Notes under the pieces: model-generated
Databases searched by the model: none
What the model was told of the DNA's origin: nothing
What the model saw: only the letters and a program-made list of their open reading frames with translations
Sequence record: MW812342.1
Length of the DNA: 64,000 nucleotides
Direction: 5' to 3' (one strand)
Program-made: the position numbers and the translations under genes
Part shown: positions 12,596-61,774 of the stretch, one piece after another
Numbering within the stretch: the stretch's first letter is position 1
How the letters are laid out: every line of letters begins with the position of its first letter

Positions 12596-12616
12596 GAGAT
12601 AGATATTATCTAAGGG
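12596..12616 (+). promoter_or_regulatory. putative early promoter/operator motif, copy 2
   Basis: GAGATAGATATTATCTAAGGG. Confidence 0.65.
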
Positions 12617-12651
12617 AAGCATCATTCTTTTCATTTATAAGGAGTATTATC

Positions 12652-13404: not shown

Positions 13405-13454
13405 CATTTTTACACCAGAGGCATAGCCTATGTGCCTCTTTGAATCCAACCATT

Positions 13455-13477
13455 CTGAGATAGATATTATCTCTGTG
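13455..13477 (+). promoter_or_regulatory. putative early promoter/operator motif, copy 3
   Basis: CTGAGATAGATATTATCTCTGTG upstream of the 363-aa gene and nvRNAP subunit gene. Confidence 0.65.
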
Positions 13478-13511
13478 AATTGACGATTGGTTTTGAAGCT
13501 GGATGTAATTA

Positions 13512-14603: not shown

Positions 14604-14616
14604 GAGGAGAGAATGT

Positions 14617-16386
14617 GTGTTTGCAGATGCGATAAAACAGTTAAAGGAGTCCGGTAAGATTGTTCCCTTTAACCGCGCGGTAGCAGAAGGCGTCGGCTAT
14701 GCACAAGCAAAAGATGGTATTCATGAACGGGTGTACGGGATTCTGAAACGCGAACTCACGTACGATGCAGAAACCAACCCACGATTGCCCATCGGGTTAG
14801 CGGTGCAACAATATCGTTTCATGTCACCATTCGAAGCCTTTATCTTCAAGGTGGCAAAGGCAGACAATCGACAAGCACGGGGTCGTGCACCTGTCTCCAT
14901 TGCCAGAACCGATCAGTATATGATCATGGCCAACATCCGTATACCGGGAGAGAACAGACTCACAGCGCGTCCGATGTATCTGCCGTTTATACGTCGCGGT
15001 GGATTAATGTATTCGTGGGGTACCTTGTACCACGTTGCACCAGTGATTCACCAACCGGGGATCTGTCGCGAGCATGGCGGTATTTTCATTAACTTCGACT
15101 TCACCCGTAAGGTCTCACTGAAATTCTGTAAGCATTCCGTGAAGATTCTGGTTAACGGGAAAAAGGAGGAAATCTTCCTGCCGGGTACATCGAACCTCTA
15201 CGTTCCTAAAACGACGCAGGGGCAAGATTCCGATGAGAAGCCTCTGTTGTATTGGTTGTTCGGTAAGTACGGCTTCAAAGAGGCTGTAGAGCGTTATACG
15301 GGCGCACGCGTTGCTATCTGGCCATCGTACAATCTCAGGTCTATCGATTTGAATAAATACGTGGTCGTGCAATCGGGTGAACCGCAACTGGGTAAAAATA
15401 TCCAGTATGCGATTGTCGTGCGGCGCGAAGATTTACCGAGCACAGAGAAGTCACGCTGGGATCAGAACGAGCACATGTTGCTGGCGATGTGTGCAGCTTT
15501 CTACAAAGCCGCGCATTTCTACGCAGGTCGCCGTACTGGTCGGAGTCAGCAACGTAACGCATTGGCACCGCTGTTCACCTCCATCAACGAATTCGATGTG
15601 GACGGTGACATCGCCAACCTGAACTCTAAGGATATCTGGAAGGAAATTCTGGGACGCAGTATTCAGGGTACGAAACCTTCTGATGTGGATTTGCTGCGAA
15701 GCATGAACAGCCACTTCATGGAGTGTGAGCGTTATGTGAACAACACGTTCCGTGCCGAACTCATGGCGGTGGACCCGGACATTGATCCAGAGATGGACAT
15801 GTTCGACTTCCTGTACTACACCACCAAGATGATGGTTCGCACACGTTTGACCAAGCAGGATGACTATTCGTCCATGTACGGCAAACGCCTAACCGTTACC
15901 GATTACCTGTTGCTTGCGCCAAAAGGGTTCACCAGTACGATCTCCAACATCCGTTGGCGGTTGAGTCAGCTGGAGAATCGGACAGCCGAAAGTTGCCACG
16001 AAACTATTCGTGATGAATTGAATAAGAAGATTGTACCTAACCTGGTTTGCCGTGGTATCACGTCAAACGGGGGCATCAACTTCTTCAATGCGTCTACTGA
16101 ATCGATGGTACTCGCGGTCTCAACGCACGCAATCGGTCAGACGGAAACAGACAGTAAACGCGGTAAGAAAGGTAAGACCGTTAACCTTAACGACCGTACC
16201 AAACACGCTTCGGCGTCGCACCTTGAATGTGGTAACGTACACTTCATTCCGAAGTCTGCCCCGTTCAAGTCCAACATCCTCAATGCGTATATGGTGACCA
16301 GCCGCCAGCTTGTGATGATGCGTAACCCGAAACTGAAGAAAGAAATCGAAGCCGCCGAAATTGACATCGCGCAAATCGGCCGATAA
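14617..16386 (+). CDS. non-virion RNA polymerase beta-like subunit, N-terminal part (phiKZ gp123-like)
   Basis: 589 aa, GTG start with GGAG RBS; RPMYLPFI...GTLYHVAPV resembles the RpoB N-terminal region; canonical position downstream of MCP. Confidence 0.75.
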   Translation: MFADAIKQLKESGKIVPFNRAVAEGVGYAQAKDGIHERVYGILKRELTYDAETNPRLPIGLAVQQYRFMSPFEAFIFKVAKADNRQARGRAPVSIARTDQYMIMANIRIPGENRLTARPMYLPFIRRGGLMYSWGTLYHVAPVIHQPGICREHGGIFINFDFTRKVSLKFCKHSVKILVNGKKEEIFLPGTSNLYVPKTTQGQDSDEKPLLYWLFGKYGFKEAVERYTGARVAIWPSYNLRSIDLNKYVVVQSGEPQLGKNIQYAIVVRREDLPSTEKSRWDQNEHMLLAMCAAFYKAAHFYAGRRTGRSQQRNALAPLFTSINEFDVDGDIANLNSKDIWKEILGRSIQGTKPSDVDLLRSMNSHFMECERYVNNTFRAELMAVDPDIDPEMDMFDFLYYTTKMMVRTRLTKQDDYSSMYGKRLTVTDYLLLAPKGFTSTISNIRWRLSQLENRTAESCHETIRDELNKKIVPNLVCRGITSNGGINFFNASTESMVLAVSTHAIGQTETDSKRGKKGKTVNLNDRTKHASASHLECGNVHFIPKSAPFKSNILNAYMVTSRQLVMMRNPKLKKEIEAAEIDIAQIGR

Positions 16387-23655: not shown

Positions 23656-24180
23656 ATGCCGTATCGTATCGACCTATCGAAACCACCCCACGAAATACTG
23701 GTGAATCGCATCAACTACGTCTGGGGTACTTCTTATAGACCAGACCAAATTGAATTCAACAGTCGTGGCGCATGGCCGCTGACGAAAGAAGAACGACGCG
23801 CGCGTGGCGTCGAATCTAAAATCGCGGCACGATTTAAAAACGGGGTAATGGGCTTTCAGGAGTTCCACCTTACCCGTGCCGACCTGACCGAACTGCTGGA
23901 AGGGGTTGTGGTAGAAGTTCCGATGGGTATTACGTGGAGCCACTACCTCGTTCCTTACATCATCGACGAGTTAGGTCTACAGCTGGGGCCGTACGATTTG
24001 GTGATTGAACCGTTAGAGGGGAATTTCACCACGTACGTTGCACACATCGAACCCCATCATCCTGCCTTCAAAGGGACGATTGATATTAAGTTCGTTGACC
24101 CGACCCCACGTAAGTTAACCGACCTCGTCACGAAATACAAACTTGACGGATTCCGCGTAGGAGAATTTTTCGATGGCTAA
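23656..24180 (+). CDS. virion protein, short member of the tail paralog family also found at 56.5-64 kb
   Basis: Shares pattern L.NRIN...TR.DL..L...LGL.L...D...AFKG...L..L.....LDG with the array. Confidence 0.55.
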   Translation: MPYRIDLSKPPHEILVNRINYVWGTSYRPDQIEFNSRGAWPLTKEERRARGVESKIAARFKNGVMGFQEFHLTRADLTELLEGVVVEVPMGITWSHYLVPYIIDELGLQLGPYDLVIEPLEGNFTTYVAHIEPHHPAFKGTIDIKFVDPTPRKLTDLVTKYKLDGFRVGEFFDG

Positions 24181-26352: not shown

Positions 26353-26976
26353 ATGAAGCTATTACAGACGCGTGTCCGCACCGTGTTACTCCCGGCCTCC
26401 GGTTTGTTAAATGCAATACCTAAGCTGCCGAACATGGTGTTGAATGAAGAGAACCGTAAACTTCTCATCAACAGCATGCTCGAAGAACGGACGTGGATAA
26501 ACTACCGAACGATGCCTGCGGGGTACTCACAACGTCACCCGCCATATGCTGGGCAAACCATGCACCTGCTTAAATCGTTGTACCGCCACGTAAACCAATC
26601 CGATGCCGAGTACGTCCACCACAAACTCGCCCCAGCCGTTATCAAGCTTCTGGGAGAGTCTTACGGACGTGTGCCGGAAGGGTGTTCTGAGACAGGCTAC
26701 GACGGTGGTTTCCCAAGCAACGCACAAATATTCGACCACGGTGTGTCTTTCCATTGGTACAAAGGGTTCCTCCATGTGAAGTGGTACCGACCCGTTGTCA
26801 ATATGCAAGAAATGTCTGTGGCCACCTACATGGACTATATCCGTACAACCGTCGGTGATAAAGAAGTGAAGGGATACCCGATTAAAAATCTGATGGACAG
26901 TATAGAAATAAACGACTTTCTCGATGATGCCAATCGGGATTTTTTGGAGAAGTGCTTATGCTCTACATTGAAGTGA
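26353..26976 (+). CDS. hypothetical protein
   Basis: ATG at 26353 after an AGGGG RBS (ORF track 26206 crosses the terminator). Confidence 0.65.
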   Translation: MKLLQTRVRTVLLPASGLLNAIPKLPNMVLNEENRKLLINSMLEERTWINYRTMPAGYSQRHPPYAGQTMHLLKSLYRHVNQSDAEYVHHKLAPAVIKLLGESYGRVPEGCSETGYDGGFPSNAQIFDHGVSFHWYKGFLHVKWYRPVVNMQEMSVATYMDYIRTTVGDKEVKGYPIKNLMDSIEINDFLDDANRDFLEKCLCSTLK

Positions 26977-27434
26977 GTCCAGATAAAATTTCAGCCGACC
27001 TGTTCCCCGGTCTGCGAAAGTGGATAGACGACCAAAACGAACACCGTAGTCAGCCACTACGAATCGTTATGGCGGTAGAAGACGATAACCCGATGGGTAT
27101 TATGGTTTATGCCGACGGCCAGATACTTTACATTTACGTCCCGACAGAGTCACGCCGGGGTGGTGTTGGTAGCGCGCTCTTACGGCGTGCCGTGCTGGAA
27201 AGTAAAGGTTCGCTGGTTACTGCAAAAGTCCATCCGTCGAACGTGGATGGATTATGTTTCATGCTCAAGTGTGGCTTCGCTATTGATGGTGGTATCATCG
27301 GGTTGGACAATGTACGTTATCATCGTATGACGAATAACATCGTCGTTGTACATACGCCGCCGGAGGAGAAGCACTTAGAAACGTTCGTGTCGAATGTGCC
27401 GATATTTTTATCGATGGCGGAAGGTAATTTCTAG
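26958..27434 (+). CDS. GNAT-family acetyltransferase
   Basis: YVPTESRRGGVGSALL (motif A) and VHPSN...FMLKCGF (motif B). Confidence 0.85.
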   Translation: MLYIEVSPDKISADLFPGLRKWIDDQNEHRSQPLRIVMAVEDDNPMGIMVYADGQILYIYVPTESRRGGVGSALLRRAVLESKGSLVTAKVHPSNVDGLCFMLKCGFAIDGGIIGLDNVRYHRMTNNIVVVHTPPEEKHLETFVSNVPIFLSMAEGNF

Positions 27435-30488: not shown

Positions 30489-30965
30489 ATGAAAGTCGTT
30501 TTAGTTTCTAAGTTAACATCCCGGCTTGGTCAGAAGTTCCACGCCGAGTTAACCGATTTGCACAACAGTCTCTATAACGACCAGCAGGCCCGTCTTAAAG
30601 ACCTGAATGGCCGTAGCGGCTTTAATGAAATCGATGATGTCTCCGAAGTCTGGAGCGAGGGGCAACAGGCCGCTATCGCAGTGGACGACGAAGGTCGGGC
30701 TGTGGGTTTCCTGTCGTTCTCCATCCAGACTGGCCGGTCGAATATGGGCAGCAAGTGGTTGTGGATTTACAACTTCTATGTCAATAACGACCAACGGGGT
30801 AAAGGTGTCGGGCTCCTGTTGATGAACGCGGTACGTGACCATGGGAAAGCCAAAGGCTGTGGTTTCATGCAGCTCTACGTGCTGGACAACAACCAGCAAG
30901 CGATTGCGATGTACCAGAAGTTTGGTTTTCGCACCGAATATCGGGATATGGTGAAGGAGATTTAA
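30489..30965 (+). CDS. GNAT-family acetyltransferase
   Basis: FYVNNDQRGKGVGLLLM (motif A) and VLDNNQQAIAMYQKFGF (motif B). Confidence 0.9.
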   Translation: MKVVLVSKLTSRLGQKFHAELTDLHNSLYNDQQARLKDLNGRSGFNEIDDVSEVWSEGQQAAIAVDDEGRAVGFLSFSIQTGRSNMGSKWLWIYNFYVNNDQRGKGVGLLLMNAVRDHGKAKGCGFMQLYVLDNNQQAIAMYQKFGFRTEYRDMVKEI

Positions 30966-32650: not shown

Positions 32651-33427
32651 ATGACTTTATTAAAAGATCCAACTGTCAAAGAAATCTATTCACTGCCAAC
32701 CGTGGATGGGAAATATCGCTATGTGTTCCAGTACAATCTCGGCGATTTAACCCAGAACAATATTCCGCGTGGTATCACCCACAAACTCGTGAATAGCGAG
32801 ACGGGTGCGACTCTGGTGAGTGGACGGTTGTTCTTCTGTGCACCCAGTTGGAAGCATGAAGATATGGTGAAGAAAATGCTCGAAGAGATGAAGCTGGTCT
32901 CCGCGAGAATGTTCTTCAAGACGGTTGCACGTAAACCTGATTTGTTGGAGACGTGGAAACATCACGACCTTCCGGCCCTGAAGGGTGCTTGCGAACGTTA
33001 CGTCTATGTTGAAGAAGCCATCAATCGTTTCTTCGCTGACGTAATGAAAACAGAACGTCTACAGAGAAAACCTGAGGATGGACAGAACTACTTCGTCCGA
33101 CAGAAGTCGGAAGAACGTATACGTGGTAAGTTCGGTGATTATGAATTGTCGGTAGTGCGTCGTTTAGAACTGTTCGGTCCGGTTACTACACTCAACGACG
33201 TCCGCGTAACGTATGAATTATCACCGTCGGCACGCGTTACCACTTCGGAAAGCGTCTCGCCCGGTACCCTCTCGTTTACGCTCCGATATCCACTGCACGA
33301 GTGGCCGATGTTGAAAGCGTTCTTCCTTGACCATCGTGTTAATCCCGTCGTCACCGCATGGATTGAAAACAGTTGGACTGAGGAACTCCGTAAACTGGCT
33401 ATGAACAAAGACAATATCGACTTCTAA
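32651..33427 (+). CDS. hypothetical (probably early) protein
   Basis: 258 aa, downstream of promoter motif, own terminator. Confidence 0.7.
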   Translation: MTLLKDPTVKEIYSLPTVDGKYRYVFQYNLGDLTQNNIPRGITHKLVNSETGATLVSGRLFFCAPSWKHEDMVKKMLEEMKLVSARMFFKTVARKPDLLETWKHHDLPALKGACERYVYVEEAINRFFADVMKTERLQRKPEDGQNYFVRQKSEERIRGKFGDYELSVVRRLELFGPVTTLNDVRVTYELSPSARVTTSESVSPGTLSFTLRYPLHEWPMLKAFFLDHRVNPVVTAWIENSWTEELRKLAMNKDNIDF

Positions 33428-33432: not shown

Positions 33433-33467
33433 CAGGCATCCTTCGGGGTGCCTGCTTTATTTTTTTT
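33433..33467 (+). terminator. Rho-independent terminator
   Basis: CAGGCATCC-TTCG-GGGTGCCTG plus T run. Confidence 0.85.
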
Positions 33468-33480
33468 GTTCAATTACAGC

Positions 33481-34180: not shown

Positions 34181-34215
34181 CCCTCTTACCCTCGGGTAAG
34201 AGGGTTTTATTTTTT
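34181..34215 (+). terminator. Rho-independent terminator
   Basis: CCCTCTTACC-CTCG-GGTAAGAGGG plus T run. Confidence 0.85.
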
Positions 34216-34252
34216 ACACCACCGGGTAGTCCTATGCTTTATTCCACAAAAT

Positions 34253-34275
34253 CTCAGATAGATATCATCTAGGTG
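34253..34275 (+). promoter_or_regulatory. putative early promoter/operator motif, copy 5
   Basis: CTCAGATAGATATCATCTAGGTG directly upstream of the HTH gene. Confidence 0.7.
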
Positions 34276-34321
34276 GACATTGAAATCAATGTCTTATTGT
34301 ACCCACAAGGAGAATCAAATA

Positions 34322-34672
34322 ATGCGTTATATCCACGATGCTACCCGCAATGCCAAAAACAAGTTCGTCAACCAGATGAGCTTCATCATTGAAAAGATTG
34401 TTGAAGACGGTGTGACCCAGCGTGAACTTGCTGACGTCGCAAAAGTCTCACCGGGCGTCATTAGCAACATCAAATTCGGTCGCGTTGACCGTGTTTCATT
34501 TGACGTCGTTAAGCGTGTCGCCGATGCCCTGCGTCTGGAATATACTATCACCGTAACGTCTCGCTTTGGTAAGGCTACCGAAGTTGTGACCGTACAAACC
34601 GGTTATGAATATATGAGACTCAATGCCGCATGGCAGGGTCACCAGGCTAAGTCCGTCCGTATCGCACACTAA
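34322..34672 (+). CDS. XRE/Cro-family helix-turn-helix protein
   Basis: GVTQRELADVAKVSPGVISNIKFG...VSFDVVKRVADAL; ATG at 34322 after an AAGGAG RBS. Confidence 0.85.
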   Translation: MRYIHDATRNAKNKFVNQMSFIIEKIVEDGVTQRELADVAKVSPGVISNIKFGRVDRVSFDVVKRVADALRLEYTITVTSRFGKATEVVTVQTGYEYMRLNAAWQGHQAKSVRIAH

Positions 34673-34683
34673 TCGAGGTTACC

Positions 34684-35148
34684 ATGAAAGCAATTTATGC
34701 CGCTGGTAAGACCCAGCACATTATTTCTCCACACGACGAATGTTGCCCACACCTCCATCAGTGGCAAATCGCACCGTATTACACCGCGCAAATTGTCGGC
34801 CCTATCCGTACGGTGTTCTACACCTGTAAGTCGTGCCACGAAGCGCTACAGAACGAAATCGCGCAGAACTTCATCCTCTGCAACGATTGCCGTAAACCGA
34901 TGGCCCCGGAAGAAGTGATTTGCTGGTCACCGTACGACAGCAACCCTGCTGAACCGACCATTTATCTGTGCAAAGACTGTGAGTGTGGCACAAAGCATTT
35001 CGACCGTGTTGAATACGACCGTGCGAATTTCGTGCAAAGCTACCCGGTCAAACAACGTAATCTCCGCCTACTCGCGACAAGCGATGCCGGAATGAACATG
35101 CGTTATATCCCGGAGCCGATTCGTCGTCCGTATGACACACACATCTAA
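34684..35148 (+). CDS. Cys-rich zinc-finger protein
   Basis: CCPH, CKSC, CNDC and CKDC pairs. Confidence 0.65.
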   Translation: MKAIYAAGKTQHIISPHDECCPHLHQWQIAPYYTAQIVGPIRTVFYTCKSCHEALQNEIAQNFILCNDCRKPMAPEEVICWSPYDSNPAEPTIYLCKDCECGTKHFDRVEYDRANFVQSYPVKQRNLRLLATSDAGMNMRYIPEPIRRPYDTHI

Positions 35149-35158
35149 AAATAAAGTA

Positions 35159-35187
35159 AAGGGGGTCTTTCCCCCTTCTTATTTTTT
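35159..35187 (+). terminator. probable terminator
   Basis: AAGGGG-gtcttt-CCCCTT plus T-rich tail. Confidence 0.55.
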
Positions 35188-35246
35188 GCCTTTTTACGCA
35201 ACTTCCCTTTCCTGTGAATAACAAGAATTTGTTGCGGGGGAAATCG

Positions 35247-36254
35247 ATGCAATCGATAGCGCAATCAACCATCATTAAACCGTCGGTCGAACCGACAGAA
35301 CAGCAAATCAACATCACCATTGAACGGCTTACTTGGGGGAGCGAGAAAGCGCGCGAGTATTATCACGCCTTTGGGTCGCGTACCATTCCGATTAAGCGAT
35401 TGAACGTCATTCTCAAGAATCCGCAGTATCAAGTCTTTGGTCTGCGTAACGACAGGCACATCCCGCTCGGATATGTCTCGGTCATTACCACCATGGGCGA
35501 TGAAACGCTCATCATTCACCATGCAGAAGAGATTATTACCAACTCTCTCAACAAAGTGGCGATGATGATGTTGTTGGATCATGTCGGGTGTCGCTATGCA
35601 ATGGCGGTTGACGGGACATCTGATAACTTCGACTTCCGCAAACGCATGGGCTTTAAGCTGATTGAAAACAACTGGATGGTGAACTGTAAGCCGTATGAGA
35701 AACTCCCTATCGATAAGCGGATTGTGGATGTCTCAGGTTTAGAGTCCCTCAGCGAACATCAGCTTGAGCAACTTACCGACTTAGTTCGCCACACCATCTG
35801 GCGCGAAGGACAGACCGATCCGTTTGGTCGGGAAATCTTCCGTGAAGTGCTACCTGAGTCGGTGATTGAACGTGGCCGTACTAGCCAGTATAAAACGCTG
35901 GTCTGGATGGATGCGGGTGACATCCTTGGTGTCGCACAACTACAATATGCCCAATGGGGTGAAGTTATCCTGAGTGGGGTTGGGGTTGATGGTTCACACA
36001 CCGGCAAACGCATCGGCCGTAATCTGGTTGCGGCTGCGACCCAGAAGGCGGGTATGTCCCACGAGCACCTGATGGCGACCACCTTTGCAGACAACGGGCC
36101 AATGAACCATTTGTTTGGCAATCTGTTAGGTTGGGAAGTGTTGCCGGGGTCAATTGGCGTCGAGCTGGTTGAAAACGCGGTAAGTTGGAAGAAGTCGAAG
36201 AAGTATCTGGGTGTGACTGCCGGTCACGGTGCCCCAGTGTACAAAGGGGATTGA
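35247..36254 (+). CDS. tandem GNAT protein (degenerate N-domain, canonical C-domain)
   Basis: C-domain VGVDGSHTGKRIGRNLV and ADNGPMNHLF...LLGW; N-domain ends FRKRMGF. Confidence 0.8.
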   Translation: MQSIAQSTIIKPSVEPTEQQINITIERLTWGSEKAREYYHAFGSRTIPIKRLNVILKNPQYQVFGLRNDRHIPLGYVSVITTMGDETLIIHHAEEIITNSLNKVAMMMLLDHVGCRYAMAVDGTSDNFDFRKRMGFKLIENNWMVNCKPYEKLPIDKRIVDVSGLESLSEHQLEQLTDLVRHTIWREGQTDPFGREIFREVLPESVIERGRTSQYKTLVWMDAGDILGVAQLQYAQWGEVILSGVGVDGSHTGKRIGRNLVAAATQKAGMSHEHLMATTFADNGPMNHLFGNLLGWEVLPGSIGVELVENAVSWKKSKKYLGVTAGHGAPVYKGD

Positions 36255-36255
36255 G

Positions 36256-37077
36256 ATGCGTTCTATTTTAAAATGGGTCGGTGGAAAGAAGCGAATCATC
36301 CAACCCCTGCGTAAGGTGTTCGGTGATGTCGAGTGTTTCGTCGAGCCGTTCGTGGGCGCAGGGTCGGTGTTCCTTAACACCAACTTCCCAAAGTACATTC
36401 TGTCTGATTACAACCCCGATCTGGTTGCGGTGCTCCGCTCCGCCATGGAAGCCCCCGATGATCTGGTCGAGGCTTGTGAGCAACTCTGGGTGAATGGGTG
36501 CGACCCTGAGGTCTATGACGCACGCCGGACAATACTCAACAACCGTGAGAATGTTACCGTCGAAGACACCATTGACCGGGCTGCCATTTTCATTTACCTG
36601 AACCGCCATGGGTACAACGGGTTGTGTCGTTACAACAAGTCGGGCGGGTATAACGTCCCGTACGGTGACCACCCAACCAAACCGTATCTACCTAAAGAAG
36701 AAATCCACGCTTTCTGGAAACGCTGCACGGAATCGGAAGTAGAGTTACGCTGCTGTGGTTTTGAGGAGACAATTATCAATGCACCGAAAGGCTCACTGAT
36801 ATACGCAGACCCTCCGTACATACCCAGCTCGAAAACGTCTTCGTTTGCGCAGTACCATAAATCCTCCTTTAACCAACAACATCAACGCCAATTGGCTAAG
36901 CTCCTGAAAGAAGCGCACCTCCGTGGTTGTCGTGTAGTCTTGTCGAACTCTGATACGCTGCTCACCAAAGACATCTACTACGGCTTCCAATGGCAGACTG
37001 TAGAGGTGGGGCGGTATTTGGGATCGAAAGCCGAGACCCGTGGACGTGTAAACGAGCTGATTGGTGTTCTGGAGTAA
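36256..37077 (+). CDS. dam: DNA adenine methyltransferase (Dam family)
   Basis: LKWVGGK, EPFVGAGSVF, YLNRHGYNGLCRYN, IYADPPY (DPPY) and LSNSDT. Confidence 0.95.
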   Translation: MRSILKWVGGKKRIIQPLRKVFGDVECFVEPFVGAGSVFLNTNFPKYILSDYNPDLVAVLRSAMEAPDDLVEACEQLWVNGCDPEVYDARRTILNNRENVTVEDTIDRAAIFIYLNRHGYNGLCRYNKSGGYNVPYGDHPTKPYLPKEEIHAFWKRCTESEVELRCCGFEETIINAPKGSLIYADPPYIPSSKTSSFAQYHKSSFNQQHQRQLAKLLKEAHLRGCRVVLSNSDTLLTKDIYYGFQWQTVEVGRYLGSKAETRGRVNELIGVLE

Positions 37078-37079
37078 CC

Positions 37080-37874
37080 ATGCACCTGTTATCGTATCCG
37101 CCCGTGTACGAGCGCCCTGTTCTCCTCAATGGTAGGCAGGTTGAAGTTGAACGTATTTGGCAAGGCATTAAACAAACCCATCCGTTAGCGATGGACGAGG
37201 AGCACTATCTGGTGGTGTCTAACACTCGCCAGACACTCCTTGTATTAAGTGGCGAACGTCACGGTGACGTGTTCCATATTCTCAATATGGTGCCGATGAC
37301 AGATAAGCCCTTTTACCAGTGGAAAAACCTCATGCGTCAACTCGAAGTGGTTCACTTCGATGTGGTATTAGACCCCAGTGCTCATGTCGAGCATGGGATA
37401 TGCCAGGCCATGGGTCTTGAGTTCGTGACAAAACGTGTGAAGTTTACCCCGTTTGATGTTTCCCGTTTCAACACACGAGCACCCATGATTCATCGTCAAG
37501 AGAACTGCTCTCTTGATGACATGGAGCGCGTGTGTGAGATAACGAAGAAATCATTACCGGGCTACAAGCACGTCCTAAAGGAAGTGGCGTTTGGCTTTAT
37601 GGAAGTGCTGGTACGCAAACAGAACGACCGGATAACATCGGTGTTGTTTGTTAGCCAGACACCCACTGCCCTGACCGTTGCTAACTATGTTTCTGTGTTC
37701 CATCCGCAGGACAGGCAGTACGCGCAGGACTTCTCGGAGTTCTTCCGCTACATGCTGAAACTGTGCGGGACGGAGAAGAAGTCGCTGTATATCTCGCTGG
37801 ATGCCAAAGCAGAGATACCGACTTACGATGGCATCACACATGAGGTGGTGACCCATCACTACACGATTGCTTAG
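37080..37874 (+). CDS. degenerate tandem GNAT-like protein
   Basis: Two-domain layout parallel to the 35247 gene (first domain ends AMGLEF); no canonical motif A; fold inferred. Confidence 0.4.
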   Translation: MHLLSYPPVYERPVLLNGRQVEVERIWQGIKQTHPLAMDEEHYLVVSNTRQTLLVLSGERHGDVFHILNMVPMTDKPFYQWKNLMRQLEVVHFDVVLDPSAHVEHGICQAMGLEFVTKRVKFTPFDVSRFNTRAPMIHRQENCSLDDMERVCEITKKSLPGYKHVLKEVAFGFMEVLVRKQNDRITSVLFVSQTPTALTVANYVSVFHPQDRQYAQDFSEFFRYMLKLCGTEKKSLYISLDAKAEIPTYDGITHEVVTHHYTIA

Positions 37875-37881
37875 GAGGGTT

Positions 37882-38643
37882 ATGAGAGAGATAACGAAAG
37901 AGGTGCTAGACGGCACGTATGACCAACCGCTTGGTCGTGGCGTATTAGACTGGCGTATCTTAGAGCTGGCCCCTATGGAAACAAAACACATTGTGGAAGT
38001 GGGACGCTGGCGCGTGTACCTGAAACGTCATCGCATTGAAGAAAGTGCGCTGCTGATTTCAGTTGACCGTTTTGGTGATGTGGAAGAATCGCTGGTTCTG
38101 TTGCCTGACGTGATGGATGTTCGTGCCGTCTTTGCGTACTCAGCAACCACCGCAGATGAAGCCCTTAAACGATTAGGGTTTGACTTGCATGCAGTGAAGT
38201 ACATCATCCCGCGCCGTGACGGTATCAGGCCACCGCCGAAGATGATTGAAAATTGCCTGCTGACGGACGAGGAAGCCAAGTCCTTTAAACAGGCCGCTGA
38301 GCAAGAAGAAAGCATCCGTAAAGCTGCGGAAGCGTACGGTATGGGCACAGCTGCATTCCACCGTGTAGACTTTGGTCACGGACGAACGGCAGTTGCGCTT
38401 ATCAATATCGTCGATGAACAAGCCGTGTTGTTAACACACTGGGCGAGTGACTTCCAATCGCAGATGACGGTTGCTGACATCTTTAACTACATCGCCTCCG
38501 GCCAGAAGAACGGCGGGGAATATGTGGTTAACCGCCAAACGTTCGATAACCCAACCCCTCTGGTGGAAACACTGGAAACCCTGAACACCGAGACACGCGG
38601 TGTTTATATTATCCTAAAAGGAGTATCTGCCCATGCAAACTAG
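37882..38643 (+). CDS. degenerate tandem GNAT-like protein
   Basis: First domain ends ALKRLGF; second has GNAT-like strand order; fold inferred. Confidence 0.35.
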   Translation: MREITKEVLDGTYDQPLGRGVLDWRILELAPMETKHIVEVGRWRVYLKRHRIEESALLISVDRFGDVEESLVLLPDVMDVRAVFAYSATTADEALKRLGFDLHAVKYIIPRRDGIRPPPKMIENCLLTDEEAKSFKQAAEQEESIRKAAEAYGMGTAAFHRVDFGHGRTAVALINIVDEQAVLLTHWASDFQSQMTVADIFNYIASGQKNGGEYVVNRQTFDNPTPLVETLETLNTETRGVYIILKGVSAHAN

Positions 38644-38929
38644 CATCAATCGTTCTGTCGCCCGTTCTAAAGAAGTGGTTTATGATGTGGTCGCCGGTGA
38701 GAAGACCCTGTTCCGTGCGGTGATTATCGAGAACAACGAACTGCTCGTGGTCTATCCGGGCACCGAGTTCTCCAAAGCGGAAAAGGTGGCACTGGATAAA
38801 CTTATCACCAAAGCAAAACACCGCGACGGCATTGCCATTCATCGTGTGGTTAACGAGCGTGAGTTAGTGGAGAACGGCAAAGACTTAGAAGTGCGGCTGG
38901 TTAGCCCGCAAGTCAACGCCTTTGTATGA
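38633..38929 (+). CDS. hypothetical protein
   Basis: 98 aa, AAGGAG RBS. Confidence 0.65.
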   Translation: MQTSINRSVARSKEVVYDVVAGEKTLFRAVIIENNELLVVYPGTEFSKAEKVALDKLITKAKHRDGIAIHRVVNERELVENGKDLEVRLVSPQVNAFV

Positions 38930-38956
38930 CACCACTAATGTTATAGAGGAATCGCA

Positions 38957-39457
38957 ATGGATGTTATCGATTTCGAACAGCTTCCACAGCACGACTTCGA
39001 CCTCGGCGTCCGTGACATGGATTGCGGCTTCGAAGAAAAAGCGCGTGCGCTGTTCCAGAAATATGGCGAACTGATTATGGGTACCGACCATCCAGATATC
39101 ACACTGGATGAGTTCGAGAAACTGATCGTCGGCCTTATCACGTCCCGTGCGCAGGACAGAGCGTTGCTGAACGAGTTGAACTTTACCACTGTGTCCCCCG
39201 CGGATGCTGCCGGTATCCTGTCGCAGTCTATCGTCCCAAGCGAAGAGATTCTCGACAAGCTGGCTGAGATGCGTGGGCCGTTCGACACGGCGGTAGAAGA
39301 CTATGCACAACAGTTAGCAGAATCAGAATACGCAATGGTCGCCCCCGAGGGCGAACAACTGCCATCCGATGAGCAAACTGAAACTGCACGTCTGCGTCTT
39401 GCGCGATACGTCATTACCAGCGTATTGGTTGATGACCGTGAAGACTGCCAGCTCTAA
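38957..39457 (+). CDS. highly acidic hypothetical protein
   Basis: About 36 D/E versus 13 K/R in 166 aa (hand count). Confidence 0.7.
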   Translation: MDVIDFEQLPQHDFDLGVRDMDCGFEEKARALFQKYGELIMGTDHPDITLDEFEKLIVGLITSRAQDRALLNELNFTTVSPADAAGILSQSIVPSEEILDKLAEMRGPFDTAVEDYAQQLAESEYAMVAPEGEQLPSDEQTETARLRLARYVITSVLVDDREDCQL

Positions 39458-39464
39458 TGAAATG

Positions 39465-39496
39465 ACCTCACCTTCGGGTGAGGTTTATTTTTTTTG
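39465..39496 (+). terminator. Rho-independent terminator
   Basis: ACCTCACC-TTCG-GGTGAGGT plus T run. Confidence 0.85.
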
Positions 39497-39555
39497 TCTT
39501 TTTACAGAATACCACCTATCTATGTCAAACCAAATAACCCTGAGGATTAAAAGCA

Positions 39556-56380: not shown

Positions 56381-56385
56381 TTTGT

Positions 56386-56422
56386 GTAGGGCACTTCGGT
56401 GCCCTACCTTTCTTTCTTTTTT
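56386..56422 (+). terminator. Rho-independent terminator
   Basis: GTAGGGCAC-TTCG-GTGCCCTAC plus T-rich tail. Confidence 0.85.
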
Positions 56423-56516
56423 TGTCATGACAAACGGCACCTTTATTATGCTGGCAGGGGGTCTACGTTATTGCGGTAACGCGGGCCTTTGTAAACCTTA
56501 CAACCGAGTTAACGCG

Positions 56517-57311
56517 ATGTCTTTTAAATCCAAACAGAATCTGCTAAAACTCATCAACAAAGAGAACAAAATCTCCCCGGAGCTGACGTTCGATGATGTT
56601 GATATCTCTCTGCCGGAGGTGGTTTCAGTCGATGGCCGTGACTCGAAGGTAGTTCTGACCTCGAAGTTATCGGGCGACGCGGGTGAGCAAATGGAGGTGT
56701 TTTATCACCGCCGTGACTTACCCGACTATATACTGGGCGATGTGACGTTCGATAGAGAAGATGTGTTTACGACACACGACTTTATTCCTGCGCTTAATCA
56801 ACGCTACGGCTTGAATCTGCTTCCGGACGACTTGGAAGACTTGCCCGTCTCAGGGAATGCGCACACTGTTATTGCAGAAGCGCTCTCCCATGAATGGCGT
56901 GGGCAGGTTACCCTTAATATCGTCGTTGGGGTGCCGTTAGCCGATGTGATACCAAATACGCAGTTGGATGGTTTGCTTTACCCTGACCACCAAGACGTGA
57001 GTGTGGGTCAAGCCTCACTCTACTCGTATGACGTTGATGCATCCTCGCTTAAATCGTGGATTCCTTCACTGCAAGCCGGTAACGCCGACATGGCCGCTTT
57101 TGCGAAAGCGTTCTCAACGGTCGTGCCGGAATTGTGGGTAGGGACAAACGATGCGGTGCCTTACAACCTTCAACAGGCGGGTTACTTGTATTACAAAGAA
57201 ACCGCCAAAGTGGTCGGTGCTAACCCGGCGTTTAAATACGTCTTAGGGTTGGAGCTGAGCCCGCTGTGTACCAACTTCCAAGGTACGCTGAACCTGTACT
57301 TTAACAACTAG
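56517..57311 (+). CDS. tail/baseplate-fibre paralog 1
   Basis: ATG at 56517 (MSFKSKQNLLKLINKEN); family motifs YHRRDL, LNQRYGLNL, LDGLLYP, GTLNLYFN. Confidence 0.7.
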   Translation: MSFKSKQNLLKLINKENKISPELTFDDVDISLPEVVSVDGRDSKVVLTSKLSGDAGEQMEVFYHRRDLPDYILGDVTFDREDVFTTHDFIPALNQRYGLNLLPDDLEDLPVSGNAHTVIAEALSHEWRGQVTLNIVVGVPLADVIPNTQLDGLLYPDHQDVSVGQASLYSYDVDASSLKSWIPSLQAGNADMAAFAKAFSTVVPELWVGTNDAVPYNLQQAGYLYYKETAKVVGANPAFKYVLGLELSPLCTNFQGTLNLYFNN

Positions 57312-57320
57312 GGGGTATAA

Positions 57321-58166
57321 GTGTCTATCTACGATAAGCCCTCACGGGAAATGTTGTTAGAGGCGATTAACCGGGATAATAACCTGACAGGGAGTAAAGC
57401 CCTGACATGGAATCAAATTGCGTCCGGTTTTCCCGAGGTCATCCAGTCAGAAGGCGCGCAACGGAATACCCGCGTTTTACTGTACGGCCTGAACGGACAG
57501 GGATATAAAGGCAATGTCACGATCGAATACGACCGTATCGATATGCCGACGTTGTTCCGCGGCGTAGTGCCGGTGGTGATTACCGACCCCGTTGGTAAAC
57601 TCTCCGAACTGCTGCCGTTTCTGAATGAAAAATATGGACTTTCATTAATCCCAGACGACATCGTCGACCAGTCTGTGAAAGACTTAGGTGAAAGTTGGGT
57701 ATTGGATGTCCAAGTCAAAAACGGCTGTCTGGCATGGCAGGGTGGGTTTACACTTCGTTTCGCGAAGTTCGTGCCTAACCTCAAGGATGTTGTGACCGAC
57801 GTTGACCTGAGTGTCATCGTTGCGCCGTATACGCTCGGCCCCAAACCGCAGGCGGAATACGTGACATACGGTTACGACTGGACAGAAATCAAAGACACCT
57901 TAACGAAAGACTGGCTCTACAACCGGACATTAACTGCCGCGGACGTTGACCTGTTGAACGAGGTGGTGCCGTTGAATTTTGTCTATGCACCGCCCGCCAG
58001 CGTCAAGCCGGGTCAAATCGGGCTGTTTGGTGCCGTGTATAAAGGGCTGGTTACACCAACCGGAAAAGACATGTACGACAATGCGTATACGCGGGTCGGC
58101 ATTATTCAGTTGGATAAAGACAGCAACTATACGGGCAATCTCATCCTTCACTTCCAACCAGTATAA
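57321..58166 (+). CDS. tail/baseplate-fibre paralog 2
   Basis: LLEAINRDN, RNTRV, GYKG, YDR, LNEKYGL, GNLILHF. Confidence 0.75.
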   Translation: MSIYDKPSREMLLEAINRDNNLTGSKALTWNQIASGFPEVIQSEGAQRNTRVLLYGLNGQGYKGNVTIEYDRIDMPTLFRGVVPVVITDPVGKLSELLPFLNEKYGLSLIPDDIVDQSVKDLGESWVLDVQVKNGCLAWQGGFTLRFAKFVPNLKDVVTDVDLSVIVAPYTLGPKPQAEYVTYGYDWTEIKDTLTKDWLYNRTLTAADVDLLNEVVPLNFVYAPPASVKPGQIGLFGAVYKGLVTPTGKDMYDNAYTRVGIIQLDKDSNYTGNLILHFQPV

Positions 58167-58175
58167 GGGTGCCGC

Positions 58176-59030
58176 ATGCCTATCTTAGCCACAGCGGAGC
58201 AGCTCATTCTGGCGGAGCTGAATGTCGAGAACAAGCTCGACCTGAAAGAAACTGACGTTGTCTTCGGGATACCCCAGATACCGACAGAGCCAGACGATGT
58301 CGCCCTTGCCAACGGGCATAATGCAATGGTGCGTGTCACGGCGACACCGCTTGCCAATGCAATGGGCCACACCGTGGTGTTTTACGACCGGCTTGCATTC
58401 GATGAGATGTTCACCGGACTGGACGGCATTCAACCCTTATCGGTACCTGCGCGTTTGGACACCGCGTTTACCTCACACGACATCGTGCCGTTGATTAACC
58501 AGTATTACGGGTTAAAGCTTCGGACGTCGGACGTTGAGCGGACGGATATCGATCGTAGTGCGTGGGTCGTTCGGTTGGTTGCCCATCCAGATTCCTTGGG
58601 ATGGATTGGTGAGTTGGATGTGAAGCTAACGCCGGGCGATGCATTAATCCCGAGTAACTTCGACCCTGACACACTGAAACCGTATTCTTACCCGTATTTC
58701 AACACCAGAGTCGGGCAAGGGGCGGTGTACAGCTACCCGTGGCGATTTGACGATTACGCGATTGAGTTACGCAACTTTGGCATTAATGCCACCGAGGCGT
58801 TCCGCACCCGTATGGCGCAAATCATGAAGACGGTAACCGGTGATGGTTGGATTGTTTACCGTAACCCGATTGAGTATAACTTGAAGGAAGCGGAGATTGT
58901 CTATAACGGCAAGAACAGTGCCGCTTATCCGACGAACCCGTCGTACGACAACGTGCTGGTCATCGAACTCTCGTTGTATTGCATCAATCTCGGTGGGCGT
59001 ATGTACATCCACTACAACGACCCTGAATAA
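58176..59030 (+). CDS. tail/baseplate-fibre paralog 3
   Basis: Same architecture; ends GRMYIHYN. Confidence 0.75.
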   Translation: MPILATAEQLILAELNVENKLDLKETDVVFGIPQIPTEPDDVALANGHNAMVRVTATPLANAMGHTVVFYDRLAFDEMFTGLDGIQPLSVPARLDTAFTSHDIVPLINQYYGLKLRTSDVERTDIDRSAWVVRLVAHPDSLGWIGELDVKLTPGDALIPSNFDPDTLKPYSYPYFNTRVGQGAVYSYPWRFDDYAIELRNFGINATEAFRTRMAQIMKTVTGDGWIVYRNPIEYNLKEAEIVYNGKNSAAYPTNPSYDNVLVIELSLYCINLGGRMYIHYNDPE

Positions 59031-59050
59031 GCCTCCTAAAGGACGTTAGA

Positions 59051-59965
59051 ATGAAACCTTTAAACAAAACCTCCGACCTTCTGGTTCTGGATCTCATCAA
59101 CGAGAAAAACCCGCAGGCGAACCTGCCGCTGACGAAAGTCATCCTGAACGCCCCGGCGGTGAACGAGGGTGATGACAAAGCGGACCGCAACACCCGTATG
59201 ACCGTAAAGGCGCGTAAGAACTCCGGCTACATCGGTACACAGGACGTGACGTACGACCGTCTGGTCGGCGAAAACCTGTTCCTGAACGTGACCGCGTATC
59301 TGGACGTGAAAGAACCGAAAACCACGACCGACCTGCTGACCAAACTGAACGAGCAGTACGGCCTGAAAATCACCGAAGATGACATCATCCCGGCGAGCAT
59401 CCCAGACGGTACCAACCCACCGCTGACCAACCCGGACGATCCCGATCCTATCCCGGTTGACCACATCGTGCAGTTCAAAGACGACTGCTACGCGTACCTC
59501 GGTAACATCCCGGTGAAAATCGGTGCCAAGCCGCAGGTGGGTGAGCGTCTGAGCCTCGTCATTACTCAGACCCAGCTGGACGGTCTGAAATACCCGGATG
59601 CGCCGCAGGACGGCAAAGGTCAGGCGTACATCTACTCCTACGGCGTAGACTGCTCACCGATCTCCAAGTTCCTGAACGCACAAGCACCGGGTGTGCTGGC
59701 GAACGATACCGCCTTTGCGGTTGAGCTGAACAAAGTCGTGCCTGAGCTGTGGATTTCCGAAGACGCCCTGAAGGACTACAACCTGAAAGGTGCGGACGTG
59801 AAATACGTGGGTCTGACTGACGATGACGGTACAGCGACCGGTACTGATCCGAAGGTGCCTGTCCCTGGTGCGAACCAGAACTACAGCCACGTTATGTTGC
59901 TGGAGCTGGATGACACCAAATGCTCTAACTTCACCGGTACCATGTTCTTGCACTTCAACGCTTAA
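59051..59965 (+). CDS. tail/baseplate-fibre paralog 4 (strong codon bias, likely highest copy number)
   Basis: Same architecture; Pro/Asp-rich insertions; ends GTMFLHFN. Confidence 0.75.
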   Translation: MKPLNKTSDLLVLDLINEKNPQANLPLTKVILNAPAVNEGDDKADRNTRMTVKARKNSGYIGTQDVTYDRLVGENLFLNVTAYLDVKEPKTTTDLLTKLNEQYGLKITEDDIIPASIPDGTNPPLTNPDDPDPIPVDHIVQFKDDCYAYLGNIPVKIGAKPQVGERLSLVITQTQLDGLKYPDAPQDGKGQAYIYSYGVDCSPISKFLNAQAPGVLANDTAFAVELNKVVPELWISEDALKDYNLKGADVKYVGLTDDDGTATGTDPKVPVPGANQNYSHVMLLELDDTKCSNFTGTMFLHFNA

Positions 59966-59975
59966 CGGCGCGCTG

Positions 59976-60015
59976 GGAGGAGGCCAATCCTCCTCCTGGC
60001 TCCGTTTTCTTTTTT
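59976..60015 (+). terminator. probable terminator
   Basis: GGAGGAGG-ccaat-CCTCCTCC followed by T-rich tract. Confidence 0.6.
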
Positions 60016-60034
60016 ATCTGCCGAGGAGTCTGCT

Positions 60035-60874: not shown

Positions 60875-60883
60875 GAATAAATC

Positions 60884-61771: not shown

Positions 61772-61774
61772 TCC

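Follow-up and report, generated by a model that had tools for sequence, protein, structure and literature searches.

A Dam-family DNA methyltransferase gene of the nucleus-forming jumbo phage pEa_SNUABM_10 (Machinavirus, Chimalliviridae), which infects Erwinia, is located among three genes encoding proteins of the GNAT fold, designated here A, C and D. The explanation that we prefer, and to which we give about an even chance of being correct, is that A is an acyltransferase accompanied by its pseudo-GNAT paralogues C and D, and that all three are co-expressed with a Dam that works independently of them. A new Dam-linked hypermodification is not supported. The conserved and apparently co-transcribed cassette offers a handle on phage acyltransferases and their pseudoenzyme copies in a well-studied group of nucleus-forming phages, SPN3US and the jumbo phages of Erwinia.

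Gene Boundaries and Predicted Transcription Unit

The window, i.e., the whole stretch of 64,000 nucleotides that was analysed, is 100% identical to GenBank record MW812342.1, and the CDS calls for A, dam, C and D are identical as well. The features of the region are listed below.

34322–34672, plus strand: HTH (Cro/C1-type) DNA-binding protein (Pfam HTH_3, E 2e-6; phrog_7126, E 5e-46; CDS as in GenBank)
34684–35148, plus strand: protein of 154 aa, a possible zinc ribbon by its three CxxC pairs (translation; phrog_8344)
35159–35177, plus strand: intrinsic-terminator-like hairpin followed by a T-run, ending the HTH/CxxC unit
35190–35216, plus strand: conserved intergenic element, candidate phage promoter (CTTTTTAC at 35190–35197 and T[G/A]TG at 35213–35216, with about 15 nt between them)
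35247–36254, plus strand: gene A, predicted 335-aa tandem-GNAT N-acyltransferase (Pfam PF00583; phrog_8663; dN/dS 0.04), stop TGA at 36252–36254
36256–37077, plus strand: dam, 273-aa orphan Dam-family N6-adenine DNA methyltransferase (PF02086, E 3.5e-52; TIGR00571), stop TAA at 37075–37077
37080–37874, plus strand: gene C, 264-aa tandem GNAT-fold protein, putative pseudo-GNAT (AlphaFold 2 pLDDT 92.3, pTM 0.83; phrog_9941), stop TAG at 37872–37874
37882–38643, plus strand: gene D, 253-aa GNAT-fold protein (AlphaFold 2 pLDDT 69.6; Foldseek; hhalign; phrog_15621)
38633–38929, plus strand: 98-aa ORF whose first 11 nt overlap D (phrog_7896)
38957–39457, plus strand: 166-aa ORF, last gene of the six-gene unit (43–60% identity in relatives)
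39464–39485, plus strand: intrinsic-terminator-like hairpin followed by a T-run, the first strong plus-strand terminator past 35177, ending the six-gene unit

The preliminary description had reported four genes separated by 1–7 bp; the coordinates match exactly, the gaps being 1, 2 and 7 nt, and Shine-Dalgarno-like runs (AAGGGGA, GGAG and GGAGGG) precede the starts of dam, C and D, respectively. All four are real genes under purifying selection, and they are regarded as functional because their dN/dS values, obtained in comparisons with Machina and pEa_SNUABM_6, are 0.04–0.12. The short gaps are not special, since 28 of the 58 adjacent plus-strand ORF pairs of the whole window are equally tight (spacing ≤10 bp). 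GNAT genes are also frequent in the window, which contains two further single-domain ones (26952–27434 and 30489–30965).

Because strong plus-strand terminators at 35159–35177 and 39464–39485 bracket A, dam, C, D, the 98-aa ORF and the 166-aa ORF, with none in between, these genes are placed in a single six-gene transcription unit. The stem of the first terminator varies in sequence and keeps its self-complementarity in ten related phages, as judged by eye from an alignment in which pairs were not formally counted. Downstream of it, CTTTTTAC (35190–35197) is invariant in all 10 SPN3US-like phages aligned, the rest of the spacer being divergent, and the arrangement of terminator, T-run and TTAC is repeated at 6557, 33460 and 39488. 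The element at 35190–35216 is a candidate promoter of the A-dam operon; the six-gene unit would start at this conserved promoter-like element and end at the distal terminator. The 98-aa ORF is kept in all relatives, with 38–50% identity in SPN3US, ChrisDB, Wellington and phiEaH2; family searches with the 166-aa ORF gave no match.

The HTH and CxxC genes, flanked by terminators at 34181–34204 and 35159–35177, form a transcription unit separate from A-dam-C-D. They had been noted earlier as HTH and Zn-finger genes; the former assignment is supported by the HTH_3 match, whereas the latter comes down to the three CxxC pairs, the Pfam zinc-ribbon match of the 154-aa protein not being significant (E 0.69). 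A thymidylate kinase gene and an HTH gene are found near A-dam-C-D.

Structure and Relatedness of the GNAT-Fold Proteins

Residues 206–295 of A match Pfam PF00583 (Acetyltransf_1) with 32.4 bits (E 1.2e-7), well past the threshold of 20.7, and the orthologues from SPN3US and Wellington match Pfam GNAT models with E-values of 2.1e-14 and 4.2e-10. The C-terminal GNAT domain recognised earlier by HTGKRIG is thus confirmed, but it can hardly be called canonical: motif A (Q/R-x-x-G-x-G/A in the β4-α3 loop, which binds the acyl-CoA pyrophosphate) is represented by H251-T-G-K-R-I-G257, which agrees with the consensus at one of three positions, compared to two of three in ChrisDB (Q-K-R-R-I-G) and three of three in SPN3US (R-K-R-G-I-G). 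G257, R258, N283 and H288 are invariant across the A orthologues. Judging from these motifs, the C-terminal domain of A is probably active and acyl-CoA-binding, the N-terminal domain is degenerate, and A looks to be the only one of the three GNAT-fold genes whose product can still bind acetyl-CoA. A would acylate its substrate through the C-terminal domain, in an arrangement like that of VipF or MshD, which also keep the acyl-CoA motif in the C-terminal domain only. The predicted substrate is most likely a small amine or a protein of either the host or the phage. The anti-CRISPR AcrVA5, a phage GNAT that acetylates a defence protein, is a precedent for such a role; AcrVA5 and the Rac protein of phiKMV-like phages are single-domain GNATs, unlike A. 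Rac, a second precedent, is a phage GNAT acetylating host protein(s) (PMC7824862).

The model of C consists of two halves, each with a β-α-α-β-β-β-α-β-α-β order of elements. The Foldseek search against the PDB yielded 181 matches with E ≤ 1e-3, where the top 50 were all tandem GNAT folds and the best was VipF (6wqb, E 3.8e-12); a tandem GNAT fold is assigned to C with high confidence. The Pfam search with C gave no match. The C family counts 8 cluster representatives among 1.84 billion proteins. For D, residues 110–230 (pLDDT 85–90) make up a second domain with this order of elements and a confident GNAT fold, and the first domain, poorly modelled (pLDDT 40–65), yet aligns with tandem GNATs; the best PDB match is VipF (6wqc, E 5e-4), Eis-like proteins, 3frm, FemX and 2wpw come next, and a tandem GNAT fold can be assigned to D with moderate confidence. 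The GNAT fold of both proteins, guessed previously from the letters, was therefore guessed rightly.

Glycine-rich motif A is absent, according to both the models and the family alignments, from the β4-α3 loops of the two C domains and of the second D domain; the loops (~73–80 and ~206–211 in C, ~189–190 in D) contain no conserved G or basic residue, and the Pfam GNAT models matched neither C nor D even at E ≤ 1. The earlier remark that the two downstream proteins lack this motif holds for both domains of C and for the second domain of D, which is modelled with confidence, and the [M/L]G[F/L] signature reported at the end of the first domain is shared by A (KRMGFKL), C (QAMGLEF) and D (KRLGFDL). 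The families of C and D have few invariant residues, mostly hydrophobic or glycine; the invariant positions of the C family are M1, W81, L84, L88 and L166, and the D family retains some that are polar or aromatic (K35, E131 and Y203). C and D are most likely inactive as acetyl-CoA-dependent GNATs, i.e., they would be pseudo-GNATs that bind other molecules or serve as adaptors or decoys, with no acetyl-CoA chemistry involved.

The loss of motif A is no proof of inactivity, as FemX and MprF are GNAT-fold enzymes that use other donors. C and D might be active transferases with a donor other than acetyl-CoA (e.g., aminoacyl-tRNA, as for FemX, MprF and L/F-transferase) and with a target in the host envelope or a host protein, which we consider unlikely. 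FemX and MprF/A-PGS, tandem GNAT-fold proteins without motif A, are among the Foldseek matches (for C, 4v34 and 9j8q with E-values near 4e-7; for D, FemX with E 0.06–0.2), and the strong purifying selection on C and D (dN/dS of C 0.05–0.07) is in line with an enzymatic role; however, tandem GNATs of the acetyl-CoA type rank higher than these matches, the matched FemX chains (335–337 aa) exceed both C (264 aa) and D (253 aa) in length, and the C family lacks conserved catalytic-looking polar residues.

The known proteins closest in architecture are Legionella VipF, the mycothiol synthase MshD, MAB_4324, 2wpw (a tandem GNAT of the clavulanate pathway), 5kgh (a GlcN N-acetyltransferase) and Eis, which have two GNAT domains in a chain of ~260–330 residues, as is the case here. 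C and D have their best structural matches among the tandem-GNAT acyltransferases of the VipF group, with TM-scores of only 0.4–0.5, and PDB sequence searches revealed no detectable similarity to tandem-GNAT acyltransferases; unlike the enzymes of the VipF group, C and D carry an acyl-CoA motif in neither domain.

BLASTP found no similarity between A, C and D. The hhalign comparisons, made with enriched family profiles for A, C and two D-type families, Dx1 (the SPN3US-type D family) and Dx2 (the family of the D described here), gave collinear alignments between Dx2 and Dx1 (E 1.9e-5, probability 78%), C and Dx2 (E 4.4e-4, 34%) and C and A (E 3.7e-3, 9%), the last being below conventional significance. 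Outside its own family, C is structurally closest to an apparent A orthologue from Kwan (E 3.5e-14, TM 0.59, 274 columns), which aligns with the C model over both domains. In BFVD, apparent orthologues of A, Dx1 and Dx2, assigned to these families by organism, name and length, match the C model better than other viral proteins outside the C family. The paralogy of the three proteins, proposed in the preliminary description, is plausible in view of the collinear chain of profiles from A through C to D, while the sequence support for it is weak to moderate. According to the explanation preferred here, C and D would be very divergent, paralogue-like copies of the two-domain fold of A that have lost the acyl-CoA loop motif. 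The families phrog_9941 and phrog_15621 (SPN3US gp106 and D-type genes), annotated formerly as "unknown function", can now be described as tandem GNAT-fold proteins without the acyl-CoA motif; these families, the annotated GNAT SPN3US gp104 and the SPN3US-type D family (gp107) would make up one small lineage-expanded family.

Dam and Comparison with the Mom System

The dam product scores 238 bits against TIGR00571 (cut-off 114.85), its residues 2–271 match the E. coli Dam structures 2g1p/4gol at E 3.1e-59, and its translation contains the DPPY catalytic motif and the SAM-binding FxGxG (FVGAG). The PADLOC label is an orphan MTase. By these features, the phage enzyme is an intact member of the Dam family (α-class N6-adenine MTase), sharing with E. 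coli Dam, P1 Dmt and T4 Dam the Dam-family fold, both motifs and the conserved DNA-recognition hairpin region; its specificity, considering its closeness to E. coli Dam and the DpnII methylase, is probably GATC. Unlike E. coli Dam, it falls below the E. coli Dam equivalog cut-off (240 bits vs. 441) and is encoded in the genome of a nucleus-forming phage that strongly avoids GATC (O/E 0.31). That such a phage keeps a Dam despite this avoidance is a testable puzzle. The gene itself, pointed out earlier as notable, is not new: Dam is already annotated in SPN3US-like phages, and all three groups of jumbo phages are known to include Dam-type methylases (PMC7824862). In the scheme that we favour, Dam would be an ordinary orphan GATC methylase, methylating phage DNA alone.

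The locus resembles the Mom system of phage Mu in combining a phage GNAT-superfamily protein with Dam and in having a small Cys-rich protein encoded upstream. Mom, however, is a single-domain protein, whereas A, C and D are two-domain, and Dam here, unlike in the Mu system, is phage-encoded, in the operon of the GNAT-fold genes. With hhalign, Mu Mom matched neither the A profile (E 0.66) nor the C profile (E 0.39), and, among the structural matches of the C model, a phage Mom comes only 33rd (E 3e-3, TM 0.24), a resemblance that is generic GNAT similarity; the membership of A or C in the Mom family was rejected. The CxxC protein (34684–35148) has no similarity to Mu Com, a terminator separates its gene from A, and, in contrast to the control of Mu mom, the upstream region is free of GATC, with no sites between 34027 and 35577, including 35149–35246 directly upstream of A. 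A Mom-type regulatory circuit was rejected on these grounds.

The hypermodification proposal of the preliminary description can be stated in full as a DNA modification system composed of A, C, D and Dam, where the GNAT would acylate adenine in a Mom-like manner at or near Dam sites, and the pseudo-GNATs and the upstream HTH and Zn-finger proteins would exert control. The apparent co-transcription of the genes, the constant embedding of dam among GNAT-fold genes, the nearby thymidylate kinase and HTH genes and the fact that Mom is a GNAT-superfamily enzyme (PMC7824862) are compatible with it. The profile, structural and regulatory comparisons given above, including the placement of HTH and CxxC in a unit behind a strong terminator, all go against it, as does the loss in Erskinevirus of A, the sole GNAT of the group with an acyl-CoA motif, while dam, C and D stay; moreover, among jumbo phages, Mom domains are found in group 2 and are typically part of fusions with endonuclease domains (PMC7824862). 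We regard such a system as very improbable. No more credit can be given to a single machine of A-dam-C-D products in the phage nucleus, in which C and D bind DNA or Dam, and A acylates adenine or a DNA-bound protein at the remaining GATC sites, and our estimate for it is lower still; were it true, it would constitute a DNA or chromatin mark new to Chimalliviridae and explain the presence of Dam in a GATC-depleted, nucleus-protected phage.

Gene Order and Evolution in Related Phages

The order A-dam-C-D-small ORF-~160-aa ORF was found in 13 of 13 phage genomes and in 3 metagenomic contigs, apart from the loss of A in the Erskinevirus phages phiEaH2 and Asesino, which retain dam-C-D. The gene dam is located between GNAT-fold genes and C directly 3' of dam in the genomes examined, with a gap at the dam-C junction of 2 nt here and 9–10 nt or an overlap in the relatives; the genomes compared are collinear over long stretches, and these cases of synteny are not independent. 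In Eowyn, dam is alone on its own strand and adjoins a gene for an HTH protein, and the genes downstream of dam in pVa-21 resemble none of A, C and D in sequence. The linkage of dam with its GNAT-fold neighbours, expected from the preliminary description, extends across the SPN3US-like clade for C and D, but Eowyn and pVa-21 have no recognisable neighbours of this kind. The six-gene unit is vertically inherited in the SPN3US-like branch of Chimalliviridae, and the association of Dam with the GNAT-fold genes would reflect a common time of expression and common descent, not shared chemistry.

The identity to the SPN3US counterparts is 29% for A, 28% for C, 54% for Dam and 43–54% for the flanking genes, and no match to D was found in SPN3US; A, C and D evolve fast compared with Dam and the flanking genes. 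Dx1 and Dx2 occur singly or both, varying between genomes. Such fast evolution and variable copy number of C and D would be expected of host-interaction genes.

Another possibility is that C and D, having no catalytic role, join Dam or A in a complex and guide the enzyme to its substrate, to a region of the DNA or to the phage nucleus. The adjacency of dam and C is invariant, translational coupling favours equimolar synthesis, and pseudoenzymes often act as partners of their active paralogues; nevertheless, Dam-family enzymes, such as E. coli Dam and T4 Dam, work as partnerless monomers, Dx1 and Dx2 are interchangeable or dispensable across genomes, and the slow evolution of Dam (54% to SPN3US) beside the fast evolution of C (28%) argues against a tightly co-evolving Dam–C interface. 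We find such a partnership improbable. As a separate observation, the order A-dam-C-D is constant, apart from the loss of A in Erskinevirus, and C always comes directly after dam, which would be compatible with a functional link, although the genomes are not independent cases.

Gene content and predicted transcription of the A-dam-C-D locus

Over 34200-39000 the sequence matches Erwinia phage pEa_SNUABM_10 (MW812342.1; record of 238,920 bp, window position being the record position minus 62,000) with 100% identity and the phages Machina, Huxley and Parshik with 91%; the assignment to Chimalliviridae made in the preliminary description is right, since the genus Machinavirus is placed in that family. 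Every gene of the region is labelled 'hypothetical protein' in the deposited pEa_SNUABM_10 record. In the records of Machina and SPN3US, gene A is annotated as a GCN5-related N-acetyltransferase, dam as a DNA adenine methylase, and C and D as hypothetical; the SPN3US counterparts of the four genes are gp104 to gp107. The ORFs are arranged as follows:

35247-36254, + strand, gene A
36256-37077, + strand, dam
37080-37874, + strand, gene C
37882-38643, + strand, gene D
38633-38929, + strand, fifth ORF (98 aa), overlapping the last 11 nt of D

The first four ORFs and their junctions, with gaps of 1, 2 and 7 nt, are as originally delineated, and a Shine-Dalgarno-like run precedes each start. Purifying selection on all four is strong (dN/dS 0.04-0.12 in two comparisons), and they are therefore real genes. 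Gaps this small do not set the locus apart; spacing of 10 bp or less occurs in 28 of the 58 neighbouring + strand ORF pairs of the whole window. Searches of C, D and the small ORFs against ncbifam and PADLOC gave no match.

Hairpins resembling intrinsic terminators are enriched in the region (21 versus 7.3 ± 2.7 in shuffles), and the strong ones relevant to the locus are:

33433, + strand, strong terminator after the 258-aa ORF
34181, + strand, strong terminator after the thymidylate kinase gene
35159, + strand, strong terminator after the CxxC gene
39464, + strand, strong terminator after the 166-aa ORF

No strong + strand terminator was found between 35180 and 39464, so A, dam, C, D, the 98-aa ORF and the 166-aa ORF form one unit; the terminator at 35159 assigns the HTH gene (34322-34672) and the CxxC gene (34684-35148) to a unit of their own. 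In the stretch preceding A, ten of the clade's phages have in common a self-complementary hairpin, whose stem sequence varies, followed by a T-run, and share the invariant sequence CTTTTTAC, followed about 15 nt further on by T[G/A]TG. The module consisting of terminator hairpin, T-run and (T/A)TTAC(A/G) spans 35159-35216 and also occurs at 6557-6569, 33433-33478 and 39464-39506. The element composed of CTTTTTAC and T[G/A]TG, extending to 35216, is a candidate promoter of a phage RNA polymerase. The virion RNA polymerases of phiKZ-like phages are reported to use extended AT-rich promoters, and the non-virion polymerase of phiKZ to start at TATG (PMC5312081). Sigma-70 promoters were discarded, their number being no higher than in shuffled sequence.

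Folds, acyl-CoA loops and possible common origin of A, C and D

PDB sequence and profile searches with A, C and D produced no significant match. The C-terminal half of A passes the Pfam gathering threshold for Acetyltransf_1, and its orthologues score higher (e.g., SPN3US, E = 2.1e-14). It had been called a canonical GNAT; the family assignment holds, but 'canonical' is overstated for the acyl-CoA loop of pEa_SNUABM_10, which reads T-G-K-R-I-G, compared with R-K-R-G-I-G in SPN3US and Q-K-R-R-I-G in ChrisDB. The last G of the loop and the next R are invariant in the family alignment, as are N283 and H288 in the α4 region. The N-terminal half of A found no match in the family search and is closed by a GF motif, as had been seen.

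The AlphaFold 2 model of C, built from an 11-sequence alignment (pLDDT 92.3, pTM 0.83), shows one GNAT-type half after another (residues 1-124 and 137-263). A Foldseek comparison with the PDB returned 181 chains at E ≤ 1e-3, and the first 50 are tandem GNAT folds without exception; the matches include VipF (3.8e-12), MAB_4324, 3tt2, the clavulanate-pathway tandem GNAT and the GlcN N-acetyltransferase, as well as MshD, Eis-like proteins, WecD and MprF. The model of D is weaker (pLDDT 69.6). Its first domain is modelled poorly; in the second (residues 110-230, pLDDT 85-90), strands and helices follow one another as in a GNAT. Tandem GNAT folds once more head the PDB matches (VipF, E = 5e-4, followed by Eis-like proteins, 3frm, FemX and 2wpw). 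The GNAT fold proposed for both downstream ORFs is thus borne out, confidently for C and less so for D. Neither a glycine nor a basic residue is conserved in the β4-α3 loop of either domain of C or in that of domain 2 of D, which confirms, at the structural positions, the earlier remark that the two genes downstream of dam lack motif A, the acyl-CoA loop motif of GNATs. In the C family, the handful of invariant positions (M1, W81, L84, L88 and L166, with G112, R119, G172 and F218 nearly invariant) look structural, and the D family has an invariant set of its own, including G153-x-G155 in another loop. The locus is predicted to encode one acyltransferase, probably active, and at least two GNAT-fold copies without an acyl-CoA site.

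A profile HMM search with C among 1.84 billion representatives found 8 clusters only, so the C family is confined to this phage clade; word-indexed protein searches with C and D returned only 3-10 close relatives. Among predicted viral structures (BFVD), the best match to the C model after its own family is a 317-aa protein of phage Kwan with the annotation GCN5-related N-acetyltransferase (E = 3.5e-14, TM 0.59), which, with 274 aligned columns, matches C over both domains. It is followed by a Derbicus GNAT, a 314-aa protein (E = 1e-11), a 256-aa phiEaH2 protein, and proteins of 265 and 252 aa. These entries were mapped to the A and D families by organism, name and length, not by accession: the Kwan protein would be the Wellington/Kwan-group orthologue of A, and the phiEaH2 protein a member of the SPN3US-type D family; by length alone, the 314-aa and 265-aa entries fit the Caitlin A orthologue and the Caitlin SPN3US-type D gene, and the 252-aa entry fits the D family of the window type. 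A, too, appears to have a tandem-GNAT layout, judging by the BFVD model of its apparent Kwan orthologue.

The preliminary description had named A, C and D three tandem-GNAT paralogues. Neither pairwise BLASTP among them nor hhalign with shallow family alignments gave a significant match; enriched family alignments improved the hhalign comparison. With these, collinear alignments were obtained for the two D-type families (E = 1.9e-5, probability 78%, 174 columns), for C and the window-type D family (E = 4.4e-4, 34%, 135 columns) and for C and A (E = 3.7e-3, 9%, 194 columns). Taken together with the structural ranking in BFVD, these comparisons make a common origin by duplication plausible; support is reasonable in the case of the D types and weak in that of A.

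BFVD also contains several proteins of about 213-215 aa, from Kwan and Huxley plus two further entries, that match the C model (E = 1e-7 to 2e-6, TM 0.31-0.34); their genes were not located in the window, and they may be further diverged members of the tandem-GNAT family. Many relatives have an ORF of about 215 aa upstream of A, which is missing from the window; considered as a further paralogue in SPN3US and ChrisDB, it gave no profile signal. Further GNAT genes of the window, and a separate group of paralogous ORFs, are:

26952-27434, single-domain GNAT, 160 aa (PF00583, E = 2.8e-5)
30489-30965, single-domain GNAT, 158 aa (PF00583, E = 1.4e-19)
56382-62617, tandem array of seven paralogous ORFs, 279-309 aa, all linked by BLASTP
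23656-24180, truncated eighth copy of the array ORF (E = 8.5e-12), 32 kb upstream of the array

The two single-domain GNATs, added to A, C and D, make five GNAT-fold genes within 12 kb. Three ORFs of the array were scanned, and all three are members of Pfam DUF7941 (E down to 3.5e-75).

Gene order and divergence among related phages

The order GNAT, dam, C, D, small ORF and ORF of about 160 aa is kept in Machina, pEa_SNUABM_6, SPN3US, pEa_SNUABM_29 and SPAsTU, and also in ChrisDB, Caitlin, pEa_SNUABM_4, Wellington, pEa_SNUABM_11 and three metagenomic contigs; the Erskinevirus phages phiEaH2 and Asesino lack A and retain dam, C and one D-type gene. All these genomes are collinear relatives, and the conserved order therefore cannot count as independent support for a functional link. 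Within the block, A, C and D evolve fastest: their identity to SPN3US is 28-29% or undetectable, while Dam reaches 54% and the flanking genes 43-54%. There are two D-type families, and genomes have one, the other or both, a distribution suggestive of an old duplication with reciprocal losses afterwards. Both families lie side by side in the loci of ChrisDB (L004, 5905-7463), Caitlin (L010, 5274-6835) and pEa_SNUABM_4 (L012, 5274-6832); SPN3US and Erskinevirus have one type only, and Machina and Wellington only the other.

The same type of Dam is encoded by two other jumbo phages. In Eowyn (Eowynvirus, Chimalliviridae), dam is alone on its strand and adjoins an HTH protein gene; in Vibrio phage pVa-21 (locus L014, 4489-6527), whose record assigns no family, it is followed by a 271-aa ORF, with which it shares a boundary base, and a 92-aa ORF. 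Sequence comparison revealed no similarity of the 271-aa and 92-aa proteins to C, D or the small ORF. The linkage of dam with the GNAT-fold genes, kept within the clade, was not seen at the sequence level in these two phages. The sizes of the two pVa-21 ORFs mirror those of C and the small ORF; the dam neighbours in pVa-21 and Eowyn were considered as hidden relatives of C and D and rejected, one being an HTH protein and sequence similarity being nil.

Upstream of the locus, ORF 32651-33427 has 95% identity to the pEa_SNUABM_6 gene, 44% to an SPN3US gene and about 20% to the Machina gene in the same place (gp112; L001, 4446-5234), and is a putative gene replacement within an otherwise 91%-identical region.

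Dam, the Mom analogy and GATC sites

The dam product is an intact Dam-family methylase (PF02086, E = 3.5e-52; TIGR00571, 238 bits versus a cut-off of 114.85), which matches E. coli Dam over the full length (E = 3.1e-59) and contains FxGxG and DPPY; its closeness to the E. coli enzyme suggests GATC specificity. An active GNAT, pseudo-GNATs and Dam had been proposed to form a Mom-like, Dam-coupled modification system. The profiles of the A and C families have no similarity to Mu Mom, and the CxxC protein, which has three CxxC pairs, is unrelated to Com. A phage Mom structure ranks only 33rd against the C model (TM 0.24), and the control region of A contains no GATC. A survey of jumbo phages placed Mom-family enzymes, typically fused to endonucleases, in group 2, and Dam-type methylases in all three groups (PMC7824862). 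Literature searches covering SPN3US gp104-107, phage tandem GNATs, Chimalliviridae Dam and the Erwinia Machina group yielded nothing on the cassette. Several tests that might have backed the proposal came out negative (similarity to Mom and Com, GATC in the promoter region, retention of the active GNAT and linkage outside the clade), and the improbable reading of a shared DNA-modification chemistry of Dam and the GNAT-fold genes has no specific support. What had been observed is real, and inferring the fold from raw sequence proved sound. The most fitting interpretation is an expansion of tandem GNAT-fold genes specific to this lineage, co-transcribed with an ordinary orphan Dam. Present evidence makes the cassette useful to annotate and a sensible object for experiments, but does not make it a new type of system.

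Of the 256 tetramers in the window, GATC is the most under-represented, with 98 sites against 246 ± 15 expected from dinucleotide shuffles and 316 from a trinucleotide Markov model (observed/expected 0.31), so this Dam-encoding phage strongly avoids Dam sites; CTAG is second (0.39). The part of the window richest in GATC is 8001-16000, with 27 sites; the remaining 8-kb bins have 7-15 each. An 85-bp stretch of this part (9096-9180) has four GATC sites as two pairs with 10-bp spacing, 9096/9106 and 9167/9177, inside the - strand gene 8086-9651, which encodes a divergent DnaB-like ATPase.
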